Shown here: positions 847 to 64,000 of the stretch, piece by piece | Layout of the letters: each line of letters starts with the position of its first letter | Numbering within the stretch: position 1 is the stretch's first letter | Source of the DNA: Trichosphaerium sp. ATCC 40318 | Taxonomy: Eukaryota > Protista > Tubulinea | Reading direction: 5' to 3' | DNA length: 64,000 nucleotides | NCBI GenBank assembly: GCA_038496445.1 | Contig: JALMLS010000071.1 | Span: forward strand, 62,001 to 126,000 | Translations under genes and position numbers: made by a program | The notes under the pieces: generated by a model | Told to the model about the DNA's origin: nothing | The model's input: only the letters and a program-made list of their open reading frames with translations | The model's database searches: none

Positions 847-1515
847 CTACGTGCACACGGTTAAACACTTGCTCATATTACTCTTGAAAGGCCTTTGTAG
901 CAAAAAAACGTGACGTCGATGACAGCTTTTCGCCGAGGAAACGTCTTTGGCATGTTTATTCACTAACAGTTTAATTTTTATATGCTCTCTGACACGTGAA
1001 TGATGTGAGAAGTCCTTATCTACACTATATGCAAGAATAATGAATGTTTCTTGACCTGGCACTAGCTCACAGTCTTTTGGATCGCTTATTGATCTGTTAC
1101 ATTCGCATGACACGATTTTTGATTTTTACCTGATAGCAGAGGAATAGTAAACGATATTTTAGTTATCCCATGTTCATGACAACCTTTCAAATTTGTCACT
1201 CTATTTTTACCACCATATTTTTCTTTGTTGTAATGTCGCGGAGGTTCAGCGATATGTTCTTCACTTTCAACATTGCCATTTTCAAGAAGTCTGAGAAACA
1301 CCAGCTTAGATCCAGCAAGACTATGATTTTTCGTATTAAATCCAACGAGTAACCACCCTTGTGCTTTGTTAGACGATGTAAAAACAAGGGGATTTTTTGT
1401 AGTTTGTACCTTGAGTCTTAGCACTTATACACCCGTTAAAAACGCCTCCATCTTCACTACTTGTATTCCACTCCAAGTTTATACCTCTTTTCGTAATGTG
1501 TTGGGCGCTAGCCAT
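847..1515 (-). CDS. DOMON-domain protein (bacterial-like), 3 exons
   Basis: MASAQHITKRGINLEW...AKTQ|GWLLVGFN...GITKISFTIPL..|DPKDCELVPGQETFIILAYS..DFSHHS. The second intron (about 1085-1129) leaves the frame off by 1 nt: a lesion, an assembly indel or an alternative donor. Confidence 0.6.
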
Positions 1516-8546: not shown

Positions 8547-9809
8547 ATGCTTCCTATTACTACGTGTTATAAAATCAACAACATCGCACATGATAATTTG
8601 TTGCGGCTACCTACAGAGATATTAGCGCATATTTTGGTTCAAACAACCACATCACGATTTGCAGCTTGTCAAACATGTCGTATATTTGCTTCTATCATTC
8701 ACGACATTATCGGATACCACGCTATCAGGGTTGAAACTATAAACCAAGTAGAATCAGTTGTAAAACATCGTGGGATTCTGAAAAATACCAGCATAGACCT
8801 TAGCTTTTGTGATTTTGGCGATACCAGCATCACACAATTTGCTGGAGTTCATACTATTTACCTCAATTATACTTCAATAACAGATGAAGGTGTAAAAGCA
8901 CTTGTTGGAGTTCATGCTATTGGCCTTGATAGCACTTTGGTAACTGACGAAGGCATTAAAGCACTTGCTGGAGTTCATACTATTACCCTTAGTTGTACTT
9001 CAGTAACTGATGAAGGTGTAAAAGCACTTGTTGGAGTTCATTTGATTAAACTTAATCGTACCTCAGTAACAGATGAAGGTGTTAAAGCACTTGTTGGAGT
9101 TCATACTATTGGCCTTGATAGCACTTTGGTAACTGATAAAGGCATTAAAGCACTTGCTGGAGTTCATACTATTACCCTTAGTCGTACTTCAGTAACTGAT
9201 GAAGGTGTAAAAGCACTTGTTGGAGTTCATTTGATTAACCTTAATCGTACCTCAGTAACAGATGAAGGTGTAAAGTTGCTTGCTGGAGTTCATACTATTA
9301 CCCTTAGTCGTACTTCAGTAACAGATGAAGGTGTAAAAGCACTTGTTGGAGTTCATACTATTGACCTTGATAGCACTTGGGTAACTGACGAAGGCATTGA
9401 AGCACTTGCTGGAGTTCATACTATTTACCTCAATTATACTTCAATAACAGATGAAGGCATCAAAGCACTTGCTGGAGTTCATACTATTTACCTCAATTAT
9501 ACTTCAATAACAGATGAAGGTGTAAAAGCACTTGCTGGAGTTCATACTATTTACCTCAAGTATACTTCAATAACAGATGAAGGCATCAAAGCACTTGCTG
9601 GAGTTCATACTATTGGCCTTGATAGCACTTTGGTAACTGACAAAGGCATTAAAGCACTTGTTGGAGTTCATACCATTGGCCTTGATCATACCTCAGTGAC
9701 TGATAAAGGCATTAAAGCGCTTGTTGGGACAAAAAAATTATATGCACGTGGCACTTTAGTAACAAATGAAGGAGTTAAAGCTGTAAAAGGAACTCGTGTA
9801 TGGATATAA
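8547..9809 (+). CDS. Intronless F-box + LRR protein (14 x 21-aa repeats)
   Basis: LLRLPTEILAHIL...CQTCRIF F-box-like N-terminus; tandem xGVHTIxLxxTxVTDEGxKAL repeats. Confidence 0.9.
   Translation: MLPITTCYKINNIAHDNLLRLPTEILAHILVQTTTSRFAACQTCRIFASIIHDIIGYHAIRVETINQVESVVKHRGILKNTSIDLSFCDFGDTSITQFAGVHTIYLNYTSITDEGVKALVGVHAIGLDSTLVTDEGIKALAGVHTITLSCTSVTDEGVKALVGVHLIKLNRTSVTDEGVKALVGVHTIGLDSTLVTDKGIKALAGVHTITLSRTSVTDEGVKALVGVHLINLNRTSVTDEGVKLLAGVHTITLSRTSVTDEGVKALVGVHTIDLDSTWVTDEGIEALAGVHTIYLNYTSITDEGIKALAGVHTIYLNYTSITDEGVKALAGVHTIYLKYTSITDEGIKALAGVHTIGLDSTLVTDKGIKALVGVHTIGLDHTSVTDKGIKALVGTKKLYARGTLVTNEGVKAVKGTRVWI
8841..9722 (+). repeat. Coding tandem array of 14 x 63-nt LRR units
   Basis: Constant framework (ggagttcat...gaaggtgtaaaagcactt) with a short variable block in each unit. 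Confidence 0.95.
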
Positions 9810-31232: not shown

Positions 31233-32156
31233 TTAATTTCTATTCATAAATAACTGTGTATATTTGATACCCAATGATTCAGTAATCTCCTCCGTTATCT
31301 GGTTATCTCCCTTAAAAAAGTACACATACATACCTTTGAGAGATACCAGATACCTCAAGCAATCATTTGTTATCTTACCAGAACAAGAACAGGCGGTGAG
31401 GTTCTCAAGATTGATCATACCTTTAAACACTGAGTCTGTTATTTCACAGCAATTAAGGAATAAGCCTTTGACATTGATCAATGCTTTGAGTCCTTTTCCT
31501 GCTGTTAATTTTGTATCATTTATGCTAACAGTGTGGATATTAGCAAGATGTTCAAGCCATGATTCTTTTGGATTATCAATTTCAAGTTGATGAACATTTC
31601 TGAGTGCCTTTACCCAATCAATTGTAACATTAGAACACCCACTAATACTTATTGAACTTGCATCGCTAAGTTCCTGTATTCCCTTAATAGTAATATTCCT
31701 ACACGGACCTAAGTCTATACTGTGCACACCCTTTAGAGCCTTCAATGAAACATCTGTTATATCTGAATTGTGAAGGCGTATATAGTGAATGTTATGCCCT
31801 CCTGATGTCAATGCAATGATATCATCATCTGTTGCGTTATTCAAGAAGATGGTGCGAACGCCATGAAGGCAAGCAATGTCTCTTTCAGTTAGAGAAATAT
31901 CAGAGCTGAATGTAAATGCTGTGCTTCTTAATAGCGGACTGCCTTTAAATAAGCGACATTCATATGACGCCTTTAGTTGTAGGTGACCGAATCCAATATT
32001 GGTGCGAATAATGTCATTAAATAACTTAGAAACAGCTGTAGCTGTTATACAGTCGCTTCTGTTTAAAAACTGTAGAATATGCGTTAAACTCTCTGGTGGT
32101 AGCTCTTGAATACCACAGTTAACGTTCCGTACTTGTATAACACGTTTTAAAGACAT
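31233..32156 (-). CDS. Intronless F-box + divergent LRR protein
   Basis: IQELPPESLTHILQFL...VSKLFNDIIRTNIGF; repeats ITDVSLKALKGVHSIDL. Confidence 0.85.
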   Translation of the reverse strand: MSLKRVIQVRNVNCGIQELPPESLTHILQFLNRSDCITATAVSKLFNDIIRTNIGFGHLQLKASYECRLFKGSPLLRSTAFTFSSDISLTERDIACLHGVRTIFLNNATDDDIIALTSGGHNIHYIRLHNSDITDVSLKALKGVHSIDLGPCRNITIKGIQELSDASSISISGCSNVTIDWVKALRNVHQLEIDNPKESWLEHLANIHTVSINDTKLTAGKGLKALINVKGLFLNCCEITDSVFKGMINLENLTACSCSGKITNDCLRYLVSLKGMYVYFFKGDNQITEEITESLGIKYTQLFMNRN

Positions 32157-32376
32157 GCTTGGGTGCAATTGCTTGTTGAAGCGAACAATACTTAAACGTG
32201 AGATTAAGTTAGTCAAAAAATAATGAAAACTGTGGCTGTCGTGGCTTCGAAGATAAAGCCACTTAAGCATGCGGTCCAGTTATAACTCGTTACTCACACC
32301 AGCCACTTCATTTTGCTACACTTAAAGAACTCAGTTTGTTATCAACAAACTAATATTGTTTTTATTACAAGTAACT

Positions 32377-47373: not shown

Positions 47374-47593
47374 GCAGGTATACTATCAAGTCACTACAAG
47401 ATGCCTCAGTCCAGGTTCTGGGAGAATATTAGATAGGCCACAGTCTTGGTTAGAAACTGCATTATTCTAAACAATAAATAGTTACAATCACATTTTTCTT
47501 ATTCATTAAAGACTACCACTGAAATCTGTGAACAGAATGTCAAATAAAATGGTTAAGTTCAGTTTTAAGTAGAATCAACAAAGAACGCCACCA

Positions 47594-47932
47594 ATGCAAA
47601 TAAAAATAAAAACACTAACAGGAAAGGATATAATGATTGAACTGGAGCCAAGTGACACTATTGAAAACGTAAAAGTAAAAATCGAAGACCAAGAAGGTGC
47701 AAAAACAAGATTAAACGCTCTAATCAAGTAAAATAATACATTTGTAGGTATTCCAACTGACCAACAGAGACTTATCTTTGCTGGGAAGAGACTAGAGGAT
47801 TGCAAGACTTTAGCGCATTATAAAGTAGAAGATGGTTCTATGTTACACCTTGTGCTACGACTTAGAGGGGATAGCGGTAGTCATGGTCAGGTCAAGGACG
47901 TCCAGAACAACACTACCTGTCGTTTAATGTAG
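47594..47932 (+). CDS. Ubiquitin/NEDD8-like variant A with RGD tail and CaaX-like end
   Basis: [34 protein letters not shown]|[18 protein letters not shown]...[29 protein letters not shown]; one 51-nt intron. Confidence 0.88.
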
Positions 47933-48549
47933 AAGCGACATCTCCTCTTGCTATAATCAAGACCTGTACATAGTTAAATAAACACAACTAGGAGCCCAAA
48001 ACCGTTGACTTAGCACTGATTAGTCAGTAAGTGCTCTTCAAGAGACACACCATAAGGATCATAAATACTGTTGAAGGTATCAAGTCAATAAGAGATTCAC
48101 ATGATTGGGCAAGGATTGAAATTAGCCATGCTGTGTACCGAATACAATCAATAGTAAATTCAAAAGCTTAACACTATCACATGGCTATTGACTCAAGTTG
48201 GAAACTCATTGTACACATTTAACTCTTTTAATTGTTTCAAGGTTGTTACTAAACATATAAAATCAAAATATATTTGTAAACGAGGATAAGTCTATCAAAT
48301 CCTGCAAAGGTACATCCATTTAGCTATATATACTTAACAGTTTGAATGTTGTACGTGTACTTGTAACCTTTTGCAAGTACTTGATACCCTTGTCGTTTCA
48401 TAAAGCTAAGCTTAAATGTTTGTTTTTTAATACAAATATCATTTATTGCTTTTTTTGTTGTAATTTTGTTTATGTTCAATCATCTTCTTTCCTACCATAA
48501 CTTATGTGGTTCAGGCCTAGAATGTTTAAGCCACCAGTACTTGCTTTCT

Positions 48550-49678
48550 CCTTCACCGCAGAAAGATTCAAAGTGTGGTCTTTGCATTTCACTATAGAAG
48601 TGTTTGAAAGCATATATCCTTAGTTCCTAAAGGTTGTTTTATCAAAAGTGTTGTTTGTATAAACAGCTTTAGCTTACTGGAACATAAGCAGCCATACGAT
48701 CACACATTTCCATAAACTGCGGTTGAATTTGTGTGATGTGTAAATCAGCAAGCATGGCTGCAGTGCCAACATCCTCATAGAAGTTTAGCTTTGGTCTTTT
48801 TTCTTTTGGCTGATTTGTACAAAGTATTAGTTTACCACGTGGTAAGTAGGACGTTGCGCACAATTATCCAGTAGCTATTATACATATGTAATGCTAGGTC
48901 ATGTGATAGTATATATGCACCGCCAATAGCGTATTTAAGAGGAAGATATTTGCTTGGTACAGAAGAAGTTGAGTCATTGTATATTCCTGTAATCCCATAG
49001 TACACTCCTCTCTTTGGGAAGTACTTTGAATACTCCAATATCTTGTTTGGAAGAAGCCACGAGTCATCATCACCTTTTTAAAGGCATTAGATGTCAGGTG
49101 ATGACAGGCGATGACAGGTTCTGTCGGGTTTTATTTGTGTATCAAAAATTGGTACATTTTAGAATGTAGTCAAAGTTGTAAGTCTCAATCGCGTATTTTA
49201 TAAACAACATCGTCTTCATAGAAAGGTCCTCGTATCTATCTACCATTTGAACAAGTTTAATGTCTCCATATGTCTCGTTCTCTATCTGTCTTGAGCATGA
49301 AAGGCTAATTAAAAAAAAACATGCAGATTCCTGTAACAATATTGTTGTTAATACTTACCGTTTCTAAGTTCCTTTATGGTATCAGGACCTTTATGTACAA
49401 GCTATTTTTAGTGTTTACAGGTTCCACCACGTGTTTCTTATCGGTGTTCTCCTCTGTGCGTATAGCGGTGCCGAAAATACTCCAAAAATTATTTTTCTGT
49501 GCGGTAGCGATTGGTTTCTTTGTCTAGGAATGTACGGAACTGAATCTCTAATTTTAGCCATAGACGAGACTTCTGGAAGGCTTAGTTGTATGATTTGATT
49601 TTTTGGCCTTGTACTCACAAAAAACAATATTAATATTATACTGTACAATAAGAGCCAATATGATTGCCAGATACGCAT
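48550..49678 (-). CDS. GT31 beta-1,3-glycosyltransferase-like
   Basis: Type II TM anchor, RRTPIRNTW, ENETYGDI, YILK|GDDDS, YAIGGAYILS, EDV; 3' end approximate. Confidence 0.85.
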
Positions 49679-50421
49679 TTGCACGGTGTATAACAAGTGC
49701 TATCTTGACAAATAGAGACTACGATTTTAGAATTTATTTCATGACTATGACTCGCTCACAAAATCACTTACAAACTTGCCAGTATACACGTAATAGACTT
49801 GTATATTTGTGGGTAAAGAAACTGATGGTTTTCACTCAAGTAATCGTGAAAGAATATTGGTGACTAAAGCAGTAGGCAGATCATACAAATAAATTATCGG
49901 ACCAAACACCTTCGCATTACTCCAGGCCATTATCACAAATAGCCATTTATAGATATTACAAGGCCATGGCTGTAGAGAAGACAAGTCTGTGGTAACAACC
50001 CATAGATAAATCGCTCCAAATAGAAAGAGCACATAAAACCGTTTCAACTGTCTCATCATTACAGAACTAACAAAACCTGATGGAAGCTAAGCAACAAAAA
50101 GAATGGCTGTACACGTGTTTTCTCCGTTACAGACGTTTGGGTAAGACTTGGTATGACTCATAAATCAACTACAAACGCCTACAACGTGTACAAGAACATG
50201 GCGAGCGGCAATCACCCACATCCCACCCAAAAATTTCCTTTTCAATTTGTTTTAAAAACCTGTAAAACTTTCTTTTATTTTCCAAGTGTTTCTTGTATAA
50301 TAGATAACAAATGCTTGGCGCTGCGCTAGAGCCACAAGACATTTTGTCTTCCTCCCAAACATCGTCTAAGTTGAGTCCCTTTGGTTAGTTGATAGAAGAG
50401 TAGTAGTTAGTATCAGAACTC

Positions 50422-51110
50422 TAACGATCATAGGCTGCTATGCAGTACCTAATCATAGTTTATATAGAGCTTTTCCCTAACGGCAGAACTCACCTCTATA
50501 TCGGACCTTATAATTTTCTTGGCCCAGACCGAGTTCCTAAGTTAATTACGTGCTACTTACGAGGACATGCTGGCTAATGTAACGATTCAAGCTTTCACAC
50601 TACGTCGGATTAAGATGGAACTTTTCACAATTCCACCTCGCAATGCATACACCCACTAAGCTAGACGGAGGACTCCCTTAAATTGTTTTCGACCAAATGG
50701 CTAGGAAGCCCCACGCGTGGTGCACACACTGCAACTACTACAATTTACTCAATATTTTCGTTTCTTTTTATACCCATAAAAACTAGTGAGAAATAAATTG
50801 TGGGATACAGAGCGTACTTCACTGAAAATTCTATTGCAATTACTCAAATATGGATAATGCACATTTCAAAACGCTCTTAAAGGCTTGCGCTTGCTAGTTA
50901 CAAGTGTGAAAACCGTATCAGCGAAGTTTTGGTTCAAAAAACGTGCAACTAATCGAGAACTTCTTTTTCTGGTTGTATTGTCGATACACTTCACTAAATC
51001 TAATTTAAGTACTCAAAAACGGATAATACGTATTTAAACACGCTCATACAGGTCTGTGGTAGCTAGTTACTTGTGTGGAAACCTTATCGGCGATGTTTTG
51101 GTTCACAAAA
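50422..51110. repeat. Non-coding module A, left copy (inverted copy at 61541-62235)
   Basis: Near-identical reverse complement of the right copy; includes a GC-richer 330-nt block and two diverged units of about 170 bp. Confidence 0.9.
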
Positions 51111-51822
51111 CGTGACACGATGTATGTTGTGTACCCAATAAAAACGCAAGTAAAGGTCTGGATTAGAAAGTTGTCACAAATGGAATTCGGTTAGTAAGGC
51201 TTCGTGTGTATTTATTGAGCGTACATAAACACAATAAAGTACCTAACATTCAAGTGTGTTGGTGACTTTTACAGGTTTCAACAGAGTACGTAGTTTAATG
51301 AACGAATTTAAAAACAGTTGCAGTTATCACCGTTGGCATGGCTATGTTGTTGTAGGTTTTAGTGTAAACAGTATTTTACCCAGCTCTATGCAACCAATTT
51401 GAACCAAAGTCACAACTTAAGGGAGCATAGTATTAGAGAAACACTGAGTACCATCCAAACAACGGTAGTAATTCTTAAAAGGTCAAAGTATAATAAACGG
51501 TAGGCCACTCTCATATCAAATTCATGCTTTTTGCAAAGCCCACACTGGTGTTATAGAAGATGCTACAACCAAGATAGTTTGTAACTGTAAAGTTCAGTGA
51601 CTGGACCATTGTCAAATGTTTGAAGGAACTGCTTATGTTGATAGCAAGTCACCTAAAGCGGCTATTCCTTAAATGTATTAATTGTCTACACGTGTTTTTT
51701 TATGTTACTTAATACTGGTATTTATTGTATCATAAGGATTAAGACGTACATACAAACTCGTATAGCCTGTTGTACCCTAATTAGGTCATCGCTATACTCA
51801 CAAGTATTAAATAGTATTTAAA

Positions 51823-52450
51823 ATGGGCGCACGACAATCAACAACACCTGAGGTAATTAGTTTATGCCAAATGATGTACTTAAACCAAGCATAGGACATA
51901 ATTTCTGAAGCAGAGCAATCTTGCCACCTACTACACCTTCCAGTGGAGCTACACCTTATTATCACAGAGCTAGATGTTCAAGTTTATATCACGTGGGCAC
52001 TCTTATCCAAGCGCACAGCAAGAACAAGATTTGATTCTGATCTTAACAAACATGGCATGTGGCTGAAAACAAGAAGAGTAACCAGAGCTATACCACCTTA
52101 CGTAATCTCAAAACTAAAAATCATAGAGAGAGGATATTGGAAACATGGTCAACGTCATGGCGAGTCTACTTGTTATTTTAACAATGGGAAACTGGGATTA
52201 CAAAGAACTTTTGTTGATGGAAAACAAGAGGGAGAATGCAAGGAGTGGTATGATAACGGTCAATTAGCAAGCTTGCGGTATTATGTCAATGGTGAGGTTG
52301 AAGGACAGTACAAGAGATGGCACTCTAATGGTAAATGGTACTTTTAAAAAAGGTCAGCGCCACGGAGAGCAAAAAAAATGGGATTTTAATGGTGAATTAC
52401 ATGGGCATGTGCTGTATATAAATGATGTACTTCAAACAACAATAATATAA
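51823..52450 (+). pseudogene. MGARQS (myristoylation-like) F-box + MORN gene with an 11-nt deletion
   Basis: MGARQSTTPE|DII..LLHLPVELHLII..YITWALLSK; lacks gtcagcaatgt near 52339 relative to the 63.6-kb copy. Confidence 0.8.
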
Positions 52451-52956
52451 AATAAGAGTGTACTTCCTTGACCAAGGTGTCCTCCAAAAAGCTTTCTCTG
52501 TGTCACTAATACAAAAGAATCATTCAATTTTTCAACTTGTATGGAAAATTTAGCAGGGCGTCCTACTTTTGGACCTTTTTAAGTAACTTTGTTAACATAT
52601 TTGCCGATAGTGTCCTATTTGTGCAACAACAGTGCATTAACCACAGCTTTACACCACCGAAACCTGTGAACAGAATGTTAGAATAACTGTTGACAACTAA
52701 TACGCAATTGTTTGGGAGAAAACACAACGTCTTAGTGACTATCAATAGCACACTGATGTCGTGTATATTTGTTACATAAAACACCACAGCGCACTCGTGC
52801 GAATTATATTATATTCAGTAAAGATATGAATTTCAAGGTTGAGCTTAGGTCTCACGAATTCAAACGCCAGCTGAAATGATTGACATACTCATTCATCAAT
52901 CAAAAAAAAAAAGTGTTAAGTTTAGTTTTAAGTAGAACCAACAAAGAACGCCACCA

Positions 52957-53060
52957 ATGAAGATAAAAATAAAAACACTACCAGGAAATGATATAATAAT
53001 TGAACTGGAGCCAAGTGACACTATTGAAAACGTAAAAGTAAAAATCGAATTCAAAGAAGG
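52957..53060 (+). pseudogene. Ubiquitin variant B, exon 1 only
   Basis: [34 protein letters not shown], then joined to a copy of 51510-51668 instead of the intron and exon 2. Confidence 0.8.
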
Positions 53061-53296
53061 TACCATGACATTTTCATATCAAATTCACACTTTTTGCAAA
53101 GCCCACACTGTAGAAGATGTTACAACCACGATTGTTATTTTCTCTTTGTAATTGTAAAGAACTTTACATTCAGTGACTAGACCATTGTCAAATGTTTGAA
53201 GGAACAGGTTAAGTTGATAGCAAGTCACCTAAAGCGGCTATTCAAAATATATTTCCCTTTGGTGACAGCAAAAAATAGAACAGTTTATTAATTCGT

Positions 53297-53895
53297 TCAC
53301 ACATTGTTACGCTTAGCTTTGATGACTTTGATACGTTCAGACAAACTGAAACCGATCTCTATGAGTGCATCCATATCAATTTCTGAAATTTTGGCACGTG
53401 CTTCATTCATAAGTGATCCAAGCTCTTGTGCTCGGTTATTGTCAAAGCCCAATCTCACCAATTCCAACTCCCAATCTGGTACTGACTGTTGCACTGAGTC
53501 ATTTTGAGTATTAGTGAAACTTTCCTACACAAGAGATGTAAATCAGTTCTATGGATCAATTCTAAAGAGTACCTCATTGATGTCAGAAACAGTAGGCTTA
53601 TTACTCCATGAATTTTGAGATATAAGTTCAGAAATATTCTTGCTTTACCATGGAACACCCCTTTTTTAAATTCGCCACTAAATTCAGCGCCGCTTGACAT
53701 AATTGCTCGCCCTGTGGCGTGTAACGTGCCTTCTGAAATTCCGCCAGTGTATTTAGAACAATCCGACAATATCATATCTACTTCACCAGTGAGTTTGCCA
53801 TCCTTACTTTCGCCATCTACAACAAAGGAGCTTAGTAAACCAAAACTGGCCCTACAAATATAGACATAACTACCATATGTATCAGTTCCTACCAC
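53297..53895 (-). pseudogene. MORN-SAM-like remnant; 3' part duplicates 43085-43430
   Basis: Direct duplicate of the SAM-like exon fused to different MORN repeats; the intron donor is mutated. Confidence 0.7.
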
Positions 53896-54090
53896 CTAGT
53901 TCCTGCTGACAACACTTAAAAAAAAACTGCCAATTAAGCGAAGAAATAAATAGCTAGCTATGCTCAAGAAGACCACGGAATGTATCGTTATTAACTTGTT
54001 AGCATTTGGTGGGTCACCTTTACGAAAAAGAAACGTCAGACTGATTTTACATTTTGTTTTTTTTTTATTTGGACTCCATTAGCTTTTTCT

Positions 54091-57000
54091 TCACTTCTTG
54101 GGTTTCATAAAGCTTGAAAAAAGACGTTTCATAATACCAAGCCTTGGTTGTCTTGTTTCATTATCATCATCACCTTCATCACCATCTTTAGATCCTTTTT
54201 TTTCGGCTAATAGTGTTTTTTCTCTTTCTTCTTTTTCTTTCTTTTCTTTTGCTTCTTTTTCAGCTCTTTCTTTTGCTAACTTCTCTGCAGCAATTGCTTC
54301 TTCTAATGCATCAGGTTTTCTAACATAATCAAAAGCATAGTATCCCTCAGGAGGAGAAAACTTGAATGGTTTTCTTCCAAAATTGAAGTCAGCCTCTGTC
54401 ACATATCTATTCATAGATAACCCAGGTGCTAACCCACCAGTTGTGTCAATACCAACAAAACAATTTCCTATAATAACAGTAAGCAAAGCAACAAAAATGC
54501 ATCAACACTGAAAGGCAAGGATTTTGTTCGACTTTCAAGAACATAAAAGTTATTGGTTTTGTACCTAGGTCTTTTCCATTGTGTCCAAAACCTAATGTTC
54601 GGTTATCCAAGTCTACGTAGCATTGAATAATATCTCCTTTGTTCCAATGAGACACTATAAAGGGAAGAAATAAGTAATAAATTGCACACAATAAACCACA
54701 AACAAATCAAAAAATGAAAAAAAATGAGTCCACAAGTAGAGCAGAACAAAACCAAAGGTAAAAACTAACCTTTGCTCTTTATCGGAATAATATCTTTAGC
54801 ATGCCATATAATAACTCTACCAAGATCTATACCCCATCCATACTCGTCATCACCAACACCACAACCTTTCATACGATTCATATCACAAGCAGGTCGTATC
54901 CAACCTAAAAAAAAGTCAAAACCTCCGGCTTTGTTTAAAGAAAAAAAACCAACAAAACACTGTCGGTTTAGGTATTGTATCTGTTTTATACCTATCTGCA
55001 TTACTCCGGCATCATTCAGTATCTCTACTTCATAATACCATCTACCAGTTTGTGCGAATACATTCGCTTTTCCACTTTCAAAGAACGGAAAGATATTTTT
55101 TGTACGTGTTCCTCCAGCATCAACAATAACACCTTCAGTAGCACGTTCCATAACCACGTCCTTTTCTTTATCATATTGAAAATCTCCTAAACATAATAAT
55201 CAGTGAATAATTTTCTTGTAGAGCAAATTAGAGTATAAGGAAGCCGTAAAACAACCAAAAGAAGAAATATAAGAAAAAAGGAGGAAAGCTTCCACAAGGT
55301 TCCTTTAAAAAAAAGCCTTTATGGCGAATTCTACTGCAAAGCACAAAACAATACGAGTAGTATAAAAAAGTACTAGATTAATTAAAAACTGTAAAATAAG
55401 GTTACCATCTATGACATCAATAGTTGATTTTATCCAAAAGCCTGCAATCTTTTCTGTTTCGTCCTTTTTCGCTTCCGTGCCAAAAACAGAGAGCTTACTT
55501 GCAGCCTTCCATTGTTGGTACTTAGACTTTAAGTACTCTTGTATTTGAGAAAGCTCAAAAGCATATTCAATTCGTACAGCCTCATGAGAGGCTAAGCTGT
55601 GGATAACAAACATTGCTGTGTTAAAAGTTTCACCATCAGTTTTTTTGAGTATTTTCAGCATGAACGTCAACAAGTTGAGCTTACACACTTGGAGAGCTAT
55701 ATCTTCTAAACCAAAAGAGTTAATACAACATAAAAGTAAATCATCAAAATAAATGGCAAGCGAGTTTGATAACCAAACAAACAATAGTAAGAAGAGAAAA
55801 AAAAGATAGAAAAAATTTACCTTTCAAACAAAACGTGTGGAGTAGTTGTAAAGCACTACGTTCTTTACCCGCCTCAGCGGTAACTACACAATCAACAGTC
55901 TTTTGTTGTAAATCTCCTACAGATAATTATAAGCAAACACAAGTTCTTCAACCAAAACCAGAATATCGGCTTTTTTGCAACGTACGATTATCTGTGAATA
56001 AAACAAGAAGCTCCATGATAAGACCCAAGAAGTATTGTGTCCATTTTCCATGACCTTCTATTTTTTTACGAAGAATTGTTATTCCTCCTCTATCCAGAAA
56101 CTCGCTTACACTCTGTTCTAAACAAAAAAATGTTACCGAAAAAAACTTACAAAGGAAGAAGTTGCTTTCTTTGAAAAAGAGCCGTAACACCAAGATACTT
56201 TCTCCACAATTTCCAAAACGACTGTGAAGTAAATATAGATAACATAGGAGAATTTAAGCGTACCATAATTATTCAGTACATGAGACAGGAGCTGAATACC
56301 AGCAACTTTTGATGGAAATAAAGTCAAGATTTGGAATATCATTTCATAACCTCCTTGCTCAATAAAGAACGAAATATTCCTCTCTAAGGAAAGATGAGTA
56401 TTGTAAAAAGAATTTAAAAGGTCCTTTAGACCCAAAAACCAAGAAATACGGATTTTCTCCCTAATTTTGTTTGGGCGTTGTGTTTTATCTTACCTGATAG
56501 TAAAAAGTACTCTACTAGACCACATAGCTTCCATGTGCCCTCATCATCCATCTTTTCAATACAATACTTGCAAATATCTATAGCAGATTTAAAATCATCC
56601 AAATTCGTTACACCTAAAGACTGTTATTTAGCACATGAGCAGCGGAGTCAAAAAAAAAAACTTGAATCAATCTACTAAGTCAAAAATTTGTTATGTGCTT
56701 CGTACGCTTTTCATGTAATAAGAATCCGACACCATGGTATTTCAGACGATTCATAGATGTGATTAACTAGATAAAGAAAAGTTAGAGGGCGAAGACATGA
56801 TGTAGATAAAACATACGCTATAGATATACTTTGAATCTGTTTTGTAGTGTTTTTTAAGCGCTGGAAACATTAAAGACCAAGCATCAAGATCAATAGCAAC
56901 TTTGAAAAAGTTGGGCCCCATCTCATTGCCTTCTTTGTGATCTAAACAAAACATAAGCAAACAAAGGGAAAAAAATAAACATAACAAAAAATTGCACAAG

Positions 57001-58779
57001 AAGCTGCAACCATAGTTACCAATGGCGTTGTAGTGGTTGAACACCAATGCTAACAGCTAATAAACATGATATTTTCTCACATACCATTGATAGCTATAAT
57101 ACCCAAAGCCTCACTAGCAGCTACCTTTAATTGCGTTTAGTATGGATCAATTGTAAAAAAAAAATATATTGTCGTTCAAATTTATACTTATGCCGTACTT
57201 GAACTTCAGGGTGATCACTGTTGTTCCGTACAATATCACAAAGCATCTCAGCTATCTTTTTTTCTTCAAAATATTCCCAATCATCAATACCATACGTCTT
57301 AACAGTCTTACCTACAAGCAACAAAAACGTAAGTTCATCACCTACACGGAAAAAAACAAAGCATTGTAACTGCATGTGTCTATCACGTGTGGCTATAAAC
57401 ACTTACGCATTATCTGATAGAATATTGTACTAAGAGTAGAGAGCGCGAATTGAAGCTCTTTACCACCTCCATAACGAATTTTATTCAAGATTGTATCCAA
57501 CACATTTTGCTGTAAAGGTCGCTTCAAAATGACCGATAGTCTCAACCCAAGATCAGCGAATGGATCTTGACCCAATTGAGATATATAATCAAATGTGCAT
57601 AAGTGCGATACACACCTAGATCCCTTTCCTAGAACAAGCCTAAATGATGAATTAGCGCACTTCAGAAAAAAAGTTTCACGACTTAAAAAAAAACATCTAA
57701 AAAAACGCACTTTGCTGTTGGTGCATCGACACCACCTGGAATTATATTTCTCATAAATACACCAGCATCATCTGCAATCTCAGTAGTTTGCATAGAATCG
57801 TATGTGCCAAGAGCCATTCTACATAGGAGGCCAGATTTTGCTTTCCACAAGATTTTTCCCTTTATTCCTAAACAAAAATTAGAAGCTCGGTTCCAGTTGT
57901 TTTTTGCGTACTTGAGTGTAGAATGGTCGTTTCACCATGTGTTACCCATCCTGCTATTATTAGTGGTTTATCAATATGAACATCATTTATGAATAGAGAG
58001 TCAGATAAGAGAATGACATCCCAAGGTTTAGCAGCACTTACAGAAAAAATTAGAAATTTTTTTCTGGACATGGTAAAAACTTCAATACGCACTCAATAGC
58101 ATCCTGCATCAATAAATATTTTCTTTTCGTACGCTTGGGTGTACCTTCTTCTTCATGTGGCTCTAAAGTATCATGGCTTTTACAAACAAAGGAAAACGAA
58201 GTCTACAAAATGTAAGCGAAGGTAAACAATAAAAAAATATTAATTCAATAAAAAAAGAATTCAGCATCCGTACGATTGCGCGGTACAAAAACTTCCCAGT
58301 GAGCTCAGGTATTAAACCATGATACCCTTGACCTGTAGGATCAGCCTTAATTACTTTAATAAAGTTTATCATGAGTGTTTCAAGAGCAAATGGTTTATCT
58401 TTCGGAGAAATAATTTTTTTTTTTCCTGCGTCATCTTCTTCTTTTTTCGAAGCCAGTTCTTCTTGTTCTTTGTCGAATTCTGCCACGTTTTTTTGAATGC
58501 TTTTAACGTATTGTTGGTAAACAGGCTGCCTTTTAAGCGCGTTAGAGTTTTTTAACGTCTGCAATTAGAATTAAAGTGTTTTATAACGGTTTTGCGGCCA
58601 TTCGAAGTTTCTAGCCAAAAATACAAATGAATTTCATTGATTTCAGGAGAATAAGCTTTCAGCTGTTGTGTGGAGTACTTAAATCACGCTGTAACGCGAA
58701 ATAGCTAATGTATTGTTTTATGTAAACGAAGAACTTACCAGACGTCTCTGTCGCTATCACCGACTTCCTTCCATAGCAT
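54091..58779 (-). CDS. Large helical-repeat (ARM-like) protein with C-terminal SPRY domain
   Basis: GRWYYEVEI..GVMQIG|W...GVGDDEYGWGID, WNKGDIIQCYVDLD, FNFGRKPFKFSPPEGY; many exons. Confidence 0.8.
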
Positions 58780-59363
58780 GCAAACGCGTAATGAGTTACA
58801 TAAGCTGACGCCATCCAAACATGTTAAAATTTGCACCTACAATATACTTATTATGATGGGGATGCCACTGGGCATACTAAAAGCTCCAAAGGAAAGTAAT
58901 CAAATGGACTGGAGTCTGAGTCATCTACAGGCTCTTCTGCGTCCATCAAATCCATGCTCCTCTTATATTCGGTCAGCTTGGTTGTCTTTACAGAAATGAA
59001 TTCGCTTGACAAAAACTTTTGTAAATGGCGCCTAATTTATCCCTCGCAACGTGGTAAATGTACGTCACTTCGTCTAGGTCGTAACGTAGAGTGGAAAGGA
59101 TTGTTGAACAGTTAGCTGTTTGTATATTACAGTATGTATTGCATGCTGGACGTTTAGTGACCAACTAAAGCGAAAAGTTAAACCACTTTTGGGTTAGATG
59201 GCTTTTTTACGTTCAAACAGCTGCTTAGCTTGTAAATTGCGCGTGAACAAAAGGTAAAACAATAAAAAAACTTCAATTCCAAAGAGAGCTTACAACATCT
59301 TGAAAGAGAGTTTGAAAAAAACGCGAAAAAATGGTCTCTTGGAGACTACTGTCACTTCCAACT

Positions 59364-61168
<1,805 letters not shown>

Positions 61169-61540
61169 TTTGATTTCTGGCTTTTCTCGTTTTACAGACA
61201 AAACGACTTCATGCAGACTTGTTGTTGACTATTTCTACCCTAAAATTTTTCCTTTTTTTGTTTCGTTCACTTTAATGGAGCAGCACGAGAGATTCTTCAA
61301 GCTAAACGTTCTAGCACTGGAATCTGCATCATTGTTATTGTTTTAACCACTCAGAATACTACTCGTTAACAGAAATACTATTTAGTAGTAAAAATCACGT
61401 GGAAGTTGATACGTACACTATTCCTAATACGTCGAAGCAAACAGATGCACACTTGTGAATGCAATTGCGGTACTTTAATATTTTTCATCTTATTATGTTC
61501 AGCGAGGAACCGTCTATACTTCCATGTGGTTATCTTACAG

Positions 61541-62235
61541 GAACCAAAACATTACCGATAAGGTTTCCACACAAGTAAATAGCTACCACAGACCTGTATG
61601 AGCGTGTTTAAATACGTATTATTCGTTTTTGAGTACTTAAATTAGATTTAGTGAGTGTATCGACAATACAACCAGAAAAAGAAGTTCTCGATTAGTTGCA
61701 CGTTTTTTGAACCAAAACTTCGCTGCTACGGTTTTCACACTTGTAACTAGCTTGCACAAGCCTTTAAGAACGTTTTGAAATGTGCATTATCCATATTTGA
61801 GTAATTAAAATAGAAATTTCAGTGAAGTAACCTTCTAGAAGCTTCTATTAATACCACAATTTATTTCTGATTAGTTTTTATGGGTATAAAAAGAAACGAA
61901 AATATTGAGTAAATTGTAGTAGTTGCAGTGTGTGCACCACGCGTGGGGCTTCCTAGCCATTTGGTCGAAAACAATTTAAGGGAGTCCTCCGTCTAGCTTA
62001 GTGGGTGTATGCATTGCGAGGTGGATCCGCGAAAAGTTCCATCTTAATCCGACGTAGTGTGAAAGCTTGAATCGTTACATTAGCCAGCATGTCCTCGTAA
62101 GTAGCACGTAATTAACTTAGGAACTCGGTCTGGGCCAAGAAAATTATAAGGTCCAATACAGAGGTGAGTTCTGCCGTTAGGGAAAAGCTCTATATAAACT
62201 ATGATTAGGTACTGCATAGCAGCCTATGATCGTTC
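61541..62235. repeat. Non-coding module A, right copy
   Basis: Reverse complement of 50422-51110. Confidence 0.9.
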
Positions 62236-62542
62236 TTTTTGATACTTGGCTTTCATCAGGTTTTGCACTATAAACTTGTTTACAAAAGATTACAAAACAA
62301 CATCAAAACAGCGTAGTATGGTAAGAAGTCTGCGATAGTTACACTTTAGGCAACAGAAATTGACTGATGTGATTGAATTAGAATTCCCGTCTTCTTTAAC
62401 GCACCATTGTTCTTCCCTGTCTTTCAAATTCAGAGACTGCTGCGTGTCGCCAAATGTACGAGGGTAAGGTAGTCAAGTTGTATACTATTTATTATGTCTT
62501 TCGTGTCATGAGTGCATTGATTGATTTAATCAACTTTCCGCC

Positions 62543-62812
62543 TTACATTCGTATCTGAAGGAATAATATAGAACCATCTTCTACTTTATAATGCGCTAAA
62601 GTCTTGCTATCCTCTAGTTCCTTCTCAGCAAAGATAATTCTTTGTAGGTTATTTGGAATACCTACAAATGTATTAATTTACTTGATTAGAGTGTTTAATC
62701 TTGTTTTTGCACCTTCTTTGAAGTCGATTTTTACTTTTACGTTTTCAATAGTGTCACTTGGCTCCAGTTCAATTATTATCTCCCCTGTTATTGATTTTAT
62801 TGTTATCTTCAT
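62543..62812 (-). CDS. Ubiquitin variant C, intact ORF with no GG tail
   Basis: [33 protein letters not shown]|[39 protein letters not shown]. Confidence 0.8.
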
Positions 62813-63519
62813 TGGTGGCGTTCTTTGTTGATTCTACTTAAAACTAAACTTAAGGGCAGTTATCCCAATCAGTGAAGGCTATTTGGCCTAATTACCATTC
62901 TGTTAACAGTAATTTAAACACAAAAACAGCCTTAGATCCTAATCAGTGAACGCTATTTGGCCTAATTACTGTTACAATAATGTCTCAACAGTGGTCCTCT
63001 AATTTAATTAAATGCACTCGGGAGTCCCATTCTTTTTATCAAAATATGCTGATTTTTTATTTTTGCTGGATTTATGCTTAGCGGCCACCTAATTTTTCAA
63101 ATAAAAACTTACTGGTGGATTGTTACTCCAGAGCCAATTTCTTATCCCACCATGTTGGTTAGAGTGAAAATAACCTTGATTGTAAAAATCACTGAGATGA
63201 GTGTCAATCATTTCAGCCGGTGTTTGAATTCGTGAGACCGAAGCTCAACCTTGAAATTCATATCTTTACTGAATGTAATTTGCACAACTGCGCTTTGGTG
63301 TTTTATGTACAAATATACACGACATCAGCGCGCTATTGATAGTCACTAAGACGTTGTCTTTCCTCCAAACAATCACGTTTAGCCTGTCGTAACAGTTATT
63401 CTAGCATTCTGTTCACAGGTTTCGGTGGTGTAATGCTGTGGCTAATGCACTGTTGTTGCACAAATAGGACACTATCGGCTAATATGTTAACAAAGTTACT
63501 TAAAAAGGAAGTACACTCA

Positions 63520-64000
63520 TTTATATTATTGTTGTTTTTAGTACATCGTTTATATACAGCGTGCTCATGTAATTCACCATTAAAATCCCAGCTCTTTTGC
63601 TCTCCGTGGCGCTTACCTTTTTTAAAAGTACATTGCTGACACCATTTACCATTAGAGTGCCATCTCTTGTACTGTCCTTCAAGCTCACCATTGACATAAT
63701 ACCGCAAGCTTGCTAGTTGACCGTTATCATACCACTCCTTGCATTCTCCCTCTTGTTTTCCATCAACAAAAGTTCTTTGTAATCCCAGTTTCCCGTTCAA
63801 GTAGACTCTCCATGACGTTGACCATGTTTCCAATATCCTCTCTCTATGATTTTTAGTTTTGAGATTACATAAGGTGGTATAGCTCTGGTTACTCTTCTTG
63901 TTTTCAGCCACATGCCGTGTTTGTTAAGATCAGAATCAAATCTTGTTCTTGCTGTGTGCTTGGATAAGAGTGCCCACGTGATATAAACTTGAACATCTAG
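63520..64000 (-). pseudogene. F-box + MORN gene (inverted copy of 51823), 10-nt deletion; runs off the window
   Basis: Reverse complement of 51969-52450; lacks ttattttaac near 63798. Confidence 0.78.

Follow-up and report, generated by a model that had tools for sequence, protein, structure and literature searches.

A divergent ubiquitin-like gene copy in Trichosphaerium with changes concentrated on the recognition patches

Ubiquitin is among the most conserved of eukaryotic proteins, and its binding face serves as the textbook case of a surface that the demands of many partners keep from changing. Why, then, does a 64,000-nucleotide stretch of the Trichosphaerium sp. ATCC 40318 genome (contig C146, positions 62001–126000; referred to as the window) carry two ubiquitin-like gene copies that differ strongly in their coding sequence and hardly at all in their intron? 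These two, A and C, and a third copy, B, were first noticed in a sequence-only reading, which took them for natural ubiquitin variants under positive selection. We re-derived the coordinates and counts of all three from the sequence, and took a census of their family by DNA searches and exon-by-exon protein searches over the entire assembly (70.3 Mb, 642 contigs, eukaryotic). The assembly holds seven members: A, B and C on contig C146, D and E on contig C239, F on contig C26, and a fragment on contig C19. Of these, A, D and F are intact and evolve under purifying selection, C is divergent, and B, E and the C19 fragment are relics. The best explanation of C that we can offer is a re-surfaced ubiquitin fold under positive selection, probably with a different partner, and our confidence in it is about evenly balanced.

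Divergence between copies A and C

The closest relative of C in the genome is A, with 68% protein identity, and the introns of the two share the same site, phase and splice sites. On re-counting, the introns differed at 2 of 51 positions and the second exons by 12 non-synonymous codon changes and one synonymous change, just as the sequence-only reading had reported; in addition, C has a stop at codon 74. The individual substitutions it had named (L8I, G47E, H68F and V70Q) were all found in C. In exon 1 the copies differ at 12 nucleotides and by an in-frame 3-nt deletion. Over the coding sequence as a whole, 29 of 216 positions differ (13.4%), compared with 3.9% of intron positions and a single difference in the 41 nt before the ATG. 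By the Nei-Gojobori method, 72 aligned codons gave 25.5 non-synonymous differences in 171 sites and 3.5 synonymous differences in 45 sites, that is, a dN of 0.166, a dS of 0.082 and a dN/dS of about 2.0. A comparison of exon with intron alone gave p = 0.085; when the nearest 41 nt upstream were counted with the intron, p was 0.004. Along the coding sequence the differences form clusters (permutation p about 0.001). One 47-nt stretch of exon 1, which encodes the core peptide reported as invariant, is indeed identical in A, B and C and also in D, with 0 chance matches expected.

We mapped the 22 amino-acid changes of C onto the ubiquitin fold. As hydrophobic core we take residues 1, 3, 5, 13, 15, 17, 23, 26, 30, 43, 50, 56, 61, 67 and 69, and as recognition surface what we take to be the Ile44 patch (8, 44, 68, 70), the Ile36 patch (36, 71, 73) and the Phe4 patch (2, 4, 12). 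One of the 15 core residues was changed, conservatively from Leu to Ile (Fisher p = 0.03), and 8 of the 10 patch residues were changed (Fisher p = 0.0007). Within the variable blocks, the inward-facing residues of the beta-strands (3, 5, 13, 67 and 69) are unchanged and their outward-facing neighbours are changed, and nine of the changes affect residues that A, D, F and canonical ubiquitin all have in common. The earlier observation that the changes lie in or beside the binding patch is borne out in this stronger form: those of C concentrate on the recognition patches and spare the core.

Selection, decay and gene conversion

To compare rates among the copies, we used our own maximum-likelihood branch model of the GY94 type on the tree ((A,C),D,F), which is backed by intron sites and by synonymous sites in codons 5 and 67 that group A with C. 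The branch leading to C had a dN/dS (omega) of 2.4 against a background of 0.13, and a one-ratio model was rejected (p = 2e-6). With the intron as a neutral clock, omega on the C branch was 3.3 (likelihood-ratio test against 1, p = 0.011), and with the intron and the 41-nt leader together it was 4.0 (p = 0.0013). When the changes were assigned to lineages by means of D and F, nearly all fell on the C lineage, with 24 changes in 171 non-synonymous sites against 3–4 in 137 neutral sites (p <= 0.0006), or against 3–4 in 92 if only neutral sites not conserved in F were counted (p = 0.005–0.02); taken together, these lineage counts gave p values of 0.0002–0.02. Since its split from B, the first exon of C has changed at 7 of 100 positions, where the flanks lead one to expect 30 in 1528 per lineage (p = 0.006); over the same time the first exon of B has changed at 1 position. 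The protein sequence of C has changed far more rapidly than those of its paralogues, and positive selection on C is moderately supported by these comparisons. The broader suggestion, that the copies in general are under positive selection, survives for C only. Selection on A, D and F is of the ordinary purifying kind (omega 0.21, dS 0.18 and 8 of 51 intron positions different for A versus D; omega 0.13 and dS about 1 for A versus F), and the family as a whole is not diversifying.

A number of points weigh against reading C as a selected gene. From codons alone, an omega of 1 on the C branch was not rejected (p = 0.14), so that a dN/dS above 1 is significant with the intron as neutral baseline (omega 3.3–4.0, p = 0.011–0.001) and is not significant without it; a Fisher test of non-synonymous versus synonymous changes was likewise non-significant (p = 0.2–0.46). 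The neutral baseline comprises about 50–140 sites and is partly constrained, as conservation of the intron ends and of the final 24 nt of the 5' leader even in F shows, and the excess shrinks to about 2-fold under the most conservative baseline. Because the case was chosen by eye from a large scan, the nominal p-values are optimistic, and our lists of core and patch residues come from general knowledge of ubiquitin structure. Then there is the gene itself. It ends prematurely at codon 74, its upstream element (described below) has been displaced by insertions to about 590 nt, its sister B and two other family members are plainly dead, and a protein search with exon 2 of A as query returned no product of copy C. 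Finally, C alters both G47 and Q49, two ubiquitin residues listed as intolerant to mutation in display libraries (PMC10453149).

Would a decaying copy look the same? On this account C is a partial duplicate under relaxed constraint that has lost its tail and its promoter spacing, and the excess and placement of its amino-acid changes are put down to chance together with a small, partly constrained baseline. The codon test, which does not reject an omega of 1, the stop at codon 74 with homology to A gone after codon 75, and the displaced upstream element all agree with such an account, as do the three clear relics among the seven family members and the frameshifted MORN gene in the sister locus. 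Neutral divergence of an exon should not, however, exceed that of its intron, and here the two stand at 13.4% and 3.9%; a branch fitted with an omega of 1 predicts about 8 intron changes, where at most 2 are seen. We simulated neutral decay as 29 random substitutions on the coding sequence of A. The frame stayed open by chance in 0.20 of the runs, which counts in favor of decay, but the core was spared in 0.05, the patches were hit as hard in 0.001, and an open frame, a spared core and hit patches occurred jointly in 0.015% (about 1.5e-4). Decay is further opposed by the clustering of the changes and, on the Fisher tests given above, by the sparing of the core and the targeting of the patches. 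Pseudogene E, which served as a control, shows the opposite of C: it has few substitutions and three frame-breaking indels at a much lower divergence, whereas the sole indel of C is in-frame. We consider decay unlikely, if still credible.

The alternation of identical and variable blocks along the gene suggests another possibility, mosaic gene conversion. An older, diverged C would have been homogenized with A in its 5' leader, exon-1 core, intron and mid-exon 2 by several short tracts, or else its variable segments would have come from a donor missing in the assembly. A and C do lie 15 kb apart in inverted orientation in a region of recent segmental duplication and rearrangement, and the variable blocks account for all 3.5 synonymous differences; moreover, exon-restricted segment switching has been described in snake venom genes, where its mechanism is not known (PMC2711939). 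A single tract would be insufficient because the variable parts of exon 1 are flanked by a leader and an intron that are both near-identical. Conversion would take at least three or four tracts of about 40–50 nt, each ending at a structurally meaningful boundary, and tracts cannot yield the alternation of unchanged inward-facing and changed outward-facing residues. Even within the variable blocks, non-synonymous differences exceed synonymous ones. Relic B is intermediate, carrying four C-derived exon-1 residues (positions 2, 14, 32 and 33) and the A state elsewhere, as stepwise substitution predicts. Nor does the 70-Mb assembly hold a candidate donor, since DNA and protein searches with C and B gave nothing closer to C than A. 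We therefore think conversion very improbable, and suspect that selection, rather than hidden recombination, has driven the divergence of C.

A family of ubiquitin folds without a Gly-Gly end

The exons of A were scanned against Pfam one at a time, and both pass the cut-off of PF00240 (25.4 bits; Table 1). Its ubiquitin fold ends in LRLRGD, after which come a tail of 19 residues with CRLM at its end and a stop, and the predicted protein of C ends in QIRM at position 73. Thus neither complete copy has a C-terminal Gly-Gly, as had been claimed, and the same is true across the family: A, D and E read Gly75-Asp76, F reads Gly-Asn, and C stops after residue 73. As no member has a Gly-Gly end, we predict that none undergoes activation or conjugation. 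Position 76 is Asp or Asn, which suggests that the Gly-Gly was lost in the ancestor of the family. Judged by their sequences, A, B and C are ubiquitin-derived. The first unit of the canonical polyubiquitin gene of this genome matches the family in the site and phase of its intron, within Gly35, which argues that the family arose by duplication of a ubiquitin gene at the DNA level and not by retroposition; a processed pseudogene, marked by intron loss and a poly-A tract, was rejected, the intron being kept in A, C, D and F and mostly kept in E.

Table 1. Features of the ubiquitin-like family and its surroundings (positions are those of the window unless a contig or locus is named)
Feature	Position	Strand	Remarks
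Copy A, exon 1	47594–47696	+	103 nt = 34 codons + 1 nt; PF00240 E = 5e-7, 29.7 bits
Copy A, intron	47697–47747	+	51 nt, GT..AG, phase 1, inside Gly35
Copy A, exon 2	47748–47932	+	PF00240 E = 8.5e-14, 51.5 bits
Copy B	52957–53059	+	exon 1 only, unrelated sequence after
Copy C, exon 1	62812–62713	-	33 codons + 1 nt; in-frame 3-nt deletion at codon 12
Copy C, intron	62712–62662	-	51 nt; 2 differences from that of A; splice sites intact
Copy C, exon 2	62661–62543	-	stop in place of codon 74; homology to A lost near codon 75
Copy D	contig C239		intact, ends GDGGSQ
Copy E	contig C239		5'-truncated; indels of 10 nt, 2 nt and 13 nt, frame-breaking
Copy F	contig C26		intact; 79-nt intron; ends LSGN + 10 residues
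C19 fragment	contig C19		decayed exon 2 with internal stop
31-nt upstream element	47508–47538	+	60–90 nt before ATG of A; family-conserved
31-nt upstream element, other copies	C239:36926–36956 and C26:455768–455798
B-side duplication arm	50423–53061	+	repeated non-coding block, frameshifted MORN gene, copy B
C-side duplication arm	61541–64000	-	repeated block, C, intact MORN open reading frame; runs off window end
F-box-LRR relic after A	48046–48249	+	tblastn with intact open reading frame following D: 39% identity over 100 residues, E = 7.6e-5
F-box-LRR genes	L002:2023–2853 (C239) and L004, about 1247–1309		downstream of D and E
F-box open reading frame	8547–9809	+	within window
F-box open reading frame	31233–32270	-	within window

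Over 73 residues, A differs from this genome's own ubiquitin at 22 positions, D at 23, F at 25 and C at 34. A retains Leu8, Ile44, His68, Val70, Ile36, Leu71, Leu73, Gln2 and Lys48. The family genes are single-unit and have AT-rich codons and an upstream element of their own. A pattern for this 31-nt element matched only upstream of A, D and F genome-wide, and a reversed control pattern gave 0 matches. In F the element is conserved even though A and F are saturated at synonymous sites, so that it probably serves as a promoter or regulatory site specific to the family. Diverged copies of it lie at 52656–52676 and 63406–63426, inside the last codons of a MORN gene. The ubiquitin-like gene is not simply the last exons of that upstream MORN gene, a model we rejected: the upstream block is not conserved as coding sequence (it has a stop in F) and is unique to A, D and F. 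Purifying selection and the common upstream element argue for a functional, non-conjugatable, ubiquitin-derived gene family.

Two further loci bear on the ubiquitin genes of this genome. The canonical polyubiquitin gene (C8:450300–450760, minus strand) has an intron of ~106 nt in Gly35 of its first unit, an apparent second intron after Gly10 of the next unit, and G+C-rich codons. Another ubiquitin-like unit, at C60:212698–212973 (minus strand), has the same intron position, directly follows sequence ending in SGG and terminates after Leu73 (LRL, stop), which gives it the look of a non-conjugatable ubiquitin joined to the end of another domain.

Outside the genome, exon 2 of A found only generic ubiquitins in a word index of 5.8 billion proteins, in IMG/VR and in JGI metagenome contigs, with 65–78% identity across the fold (65–73% for the viral contigs of IMG/VR) and nothing on the tail, which has no homologue in any of the three. 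Either the family is lineage-specific, as it seems, or its relatives have yet to be sampled. A viral origin is unsupported, the viral contigs giving generic ubiquitins only and the base composition being even across the window.

Among known ubiquitin-like proteins, the nearest is the canonical ubiquitin of the same genome, which has the same PF00240 fold and Gly35 intron site and phase. The family differs from it in sequence to the extent given above, in lacking Gly-Gly, in being single-unit and in its AT-rich codons, and it falls short of ubiquitin proper both in the Gly-Gly end and in near-identity to the 76-residue sequence. NEDD8, whose hallmarks we take to be Ala72 in place of Arg72 and an LALRGG end, was rejected: Arg72 is present in all copies, there is no Gly-Gly end, and every residue at which A matches NEDD8 rather than ubiquitin is also variable within the family. 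The MUB/UBL3 proteins (PF13881) are likewise non-conjugatable ubiquitin folds, and the CRLM end of A would fit a CaaX prenylation box, but the family is much nearer to ubiquitin in sequence than MUBs are. We rejected this assignment too, with PF13881 scoring 18.5 bits against a cut-off of 23 and a Cys-ending tail absent from C, D, E and F. Nor is a CaaX box a feature of the family, as A alone has CRLM.

What might such proteins do? We propose that a ubiquitin gene with the Gly35 intron was duplicated in this protist and became the source of a small, lineage-specific set of free ubiquitin folds that are not conjugatable, in which Gly76 would have become Asp or Asn followed by a short, variable tail. 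A, D and F keep the Ile44, Ile36 and Gln2 recognition residues and are under purifying selection. As free ubiquitin mimics with an Ile44 patch and Lys48, they might bind to ubiquitin receptors, to E2 or E3 enzymes or to the proteasome, and there may also be a link with the neighboring F-box-LRR genes, the family sitting amid a very large F-box repertoire. A recent local duplication on contig C146 would then have founded the B/C lineage, in which B was frozen as an exon-1 relic. C has kept its open frame, splice sites and hydrophobic core, and has replaced nearly all of its recognition-patch residues, apparently at above the neutral rate. If translated, it presumably no longer binds the usual partners of the family and probably binds another.

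The sequence-only reading had gone further and proposed that the copies act as natural decoys for, or inhibitors of, deubiquitinases or E3 ligases; with enzymes of the host or of viruses as targets, this would amount to an arms race. Such a role would suit non-conjugatable ubiquitin folds, one of which has its changes clustered on the partner-binding face, and it would suit their setting, which is rich in E3 substrate receptors. The F-box repertoire of the genome is very large (1398 first-look candidates, with all 150 of those scored passing the Pfam cut-off), an F-box-LRR gene directly follows D and E, and F-box families are known targets of positive selection (PMC8120010). On the other hand, acceleration is seen in one copy only, and A, D and F resemble stable, housekeeping-type mimics. 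C is without His68 and Val70 and without the Arg74-Gly75-Gly76 tail that deubiquitinases grip, and there is no link to viruses, whose contigs hold generic ubiquitins only. C has lost most of the canonical binding patch rather than tuned it, and a new or lost partner fits better than a ubiquitin decoy. We consider the decoy role quite unlikely. A more general version has similarly little going for it in our estimation: that a protist with F-box genes on the order of a thousand has evolved its own encoded ubiquitin variants, free and non-conjugatable folds that arose beside F-box-LRR and MORN genes and were re-surfaced by positive selection after each duplication, which would modulate particular E3 ligases, deubiquitinases or ubiquitin receptors as a natural counterpart of the ubiquitin-variant inhibitors made in the laboratory.

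In those engineered ubiquitin variants (UbVs), chosen residues of ubiquitin are diversified and selected for tighter binding (PMC10453149). They resemble C in that a scaffold is kept and binding is altered through varied residues, C having changed its partner face and spared its core. They differ in being laboratory products, whereas C is a natural sequence, for which any target is hypothetical, and alters the mutation-intolerant G47 and Q49; the review in question lists no diversified positions with which C could be compared. Natural variants have a precedent in human UBB pseudogene 4 (UbKEKS). These natural, expressed ubiquitin variants are reported to be functional on the strength of re-analysed public RNA-sequencing and proteomics data (PMC7066184). 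They are, like the copies described here, natural divergent ubiquitin copies of a kind once dismissed as pseudogenes that may encode functional variants. By that account they are expressed, whereas the copies in the window are known from sequence alone; these latter are predicted to be non-conjugatable.

The evolutionary pattern itself is that of snake venom gene families, in which accelerated point mutation and the process called ASSET have been described (PMC2711939, PMC6062510). There, too, introns are more alike than exons, surface segments change while the scaffold is kept, and the genes are young, clustered duplicates. The venom genes, however, encode secreted animal toxins with many paralogues and strong statistics, and here we have a single protist ubiquitin fold of intracellular type, with one accelerated copy. 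In a brief literature search we met with no natural ubiquitin paralogue described as both non-conjugatable and undergoing such a rewriting of its recognition face. C shows a known evolutionary pattern in an unusual protein. If the re-surfacing of C is real, a paralogue that keeps its fold has swapped almost its whole face within a few percent of neutral divergence, and the scaffold would be no less evolvable in nature than in display libraries. Such a paralogue would also help in learning how a protist so richly supplied with F-box genes controls or diversifies its ubiquitin system. Should C turn out not to be expressed, it becomes a useful caution that exon-biased divergence in one small gene can mimic selection.

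Neighboring genes and local duplication

The window has a uniform G+C content of ~37% and short introns bounded by GT..AG, and a Pfam domain scan found it dense in F-box-LRR, MORN and SPRY genes. D and E each have an F-box-LRR gene 60–100 nt downstream on the same strand, and a relic of such a gene follows A (Table 1). The ancestral unit of duplication appears to have been a ubiquitin-like gene together with an F-box-LRR gene.

A recent segmental duplication, inverted and permuted, has the B and C loci as its two arms. Repeat finding and blastn gave 60 mismatches in 1528 aligned bases of the arm flanks (3.9%). The homology of A to B and C is confined to the gene and a short leader. Both arms carry a non-coding block of ~690 nt as an inverted duplicate (50423–51104 and 61541–62234, 94.5–98% identity), in which an Rfam search of the 44–64 kb region found no family at threshold. 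The MORN gene beside C (63396–63911) is one open frame of 171 residues. That beside B (51943–52686) is frameshifted and spread over several frames, which indicates that the B-side arm is decaying. Upstream of C, between its leader and the displaced element, a motif of ~60 nt occurs twice in tandem (62860–62965), as part of ~330 nt inserted relative to the B locus.

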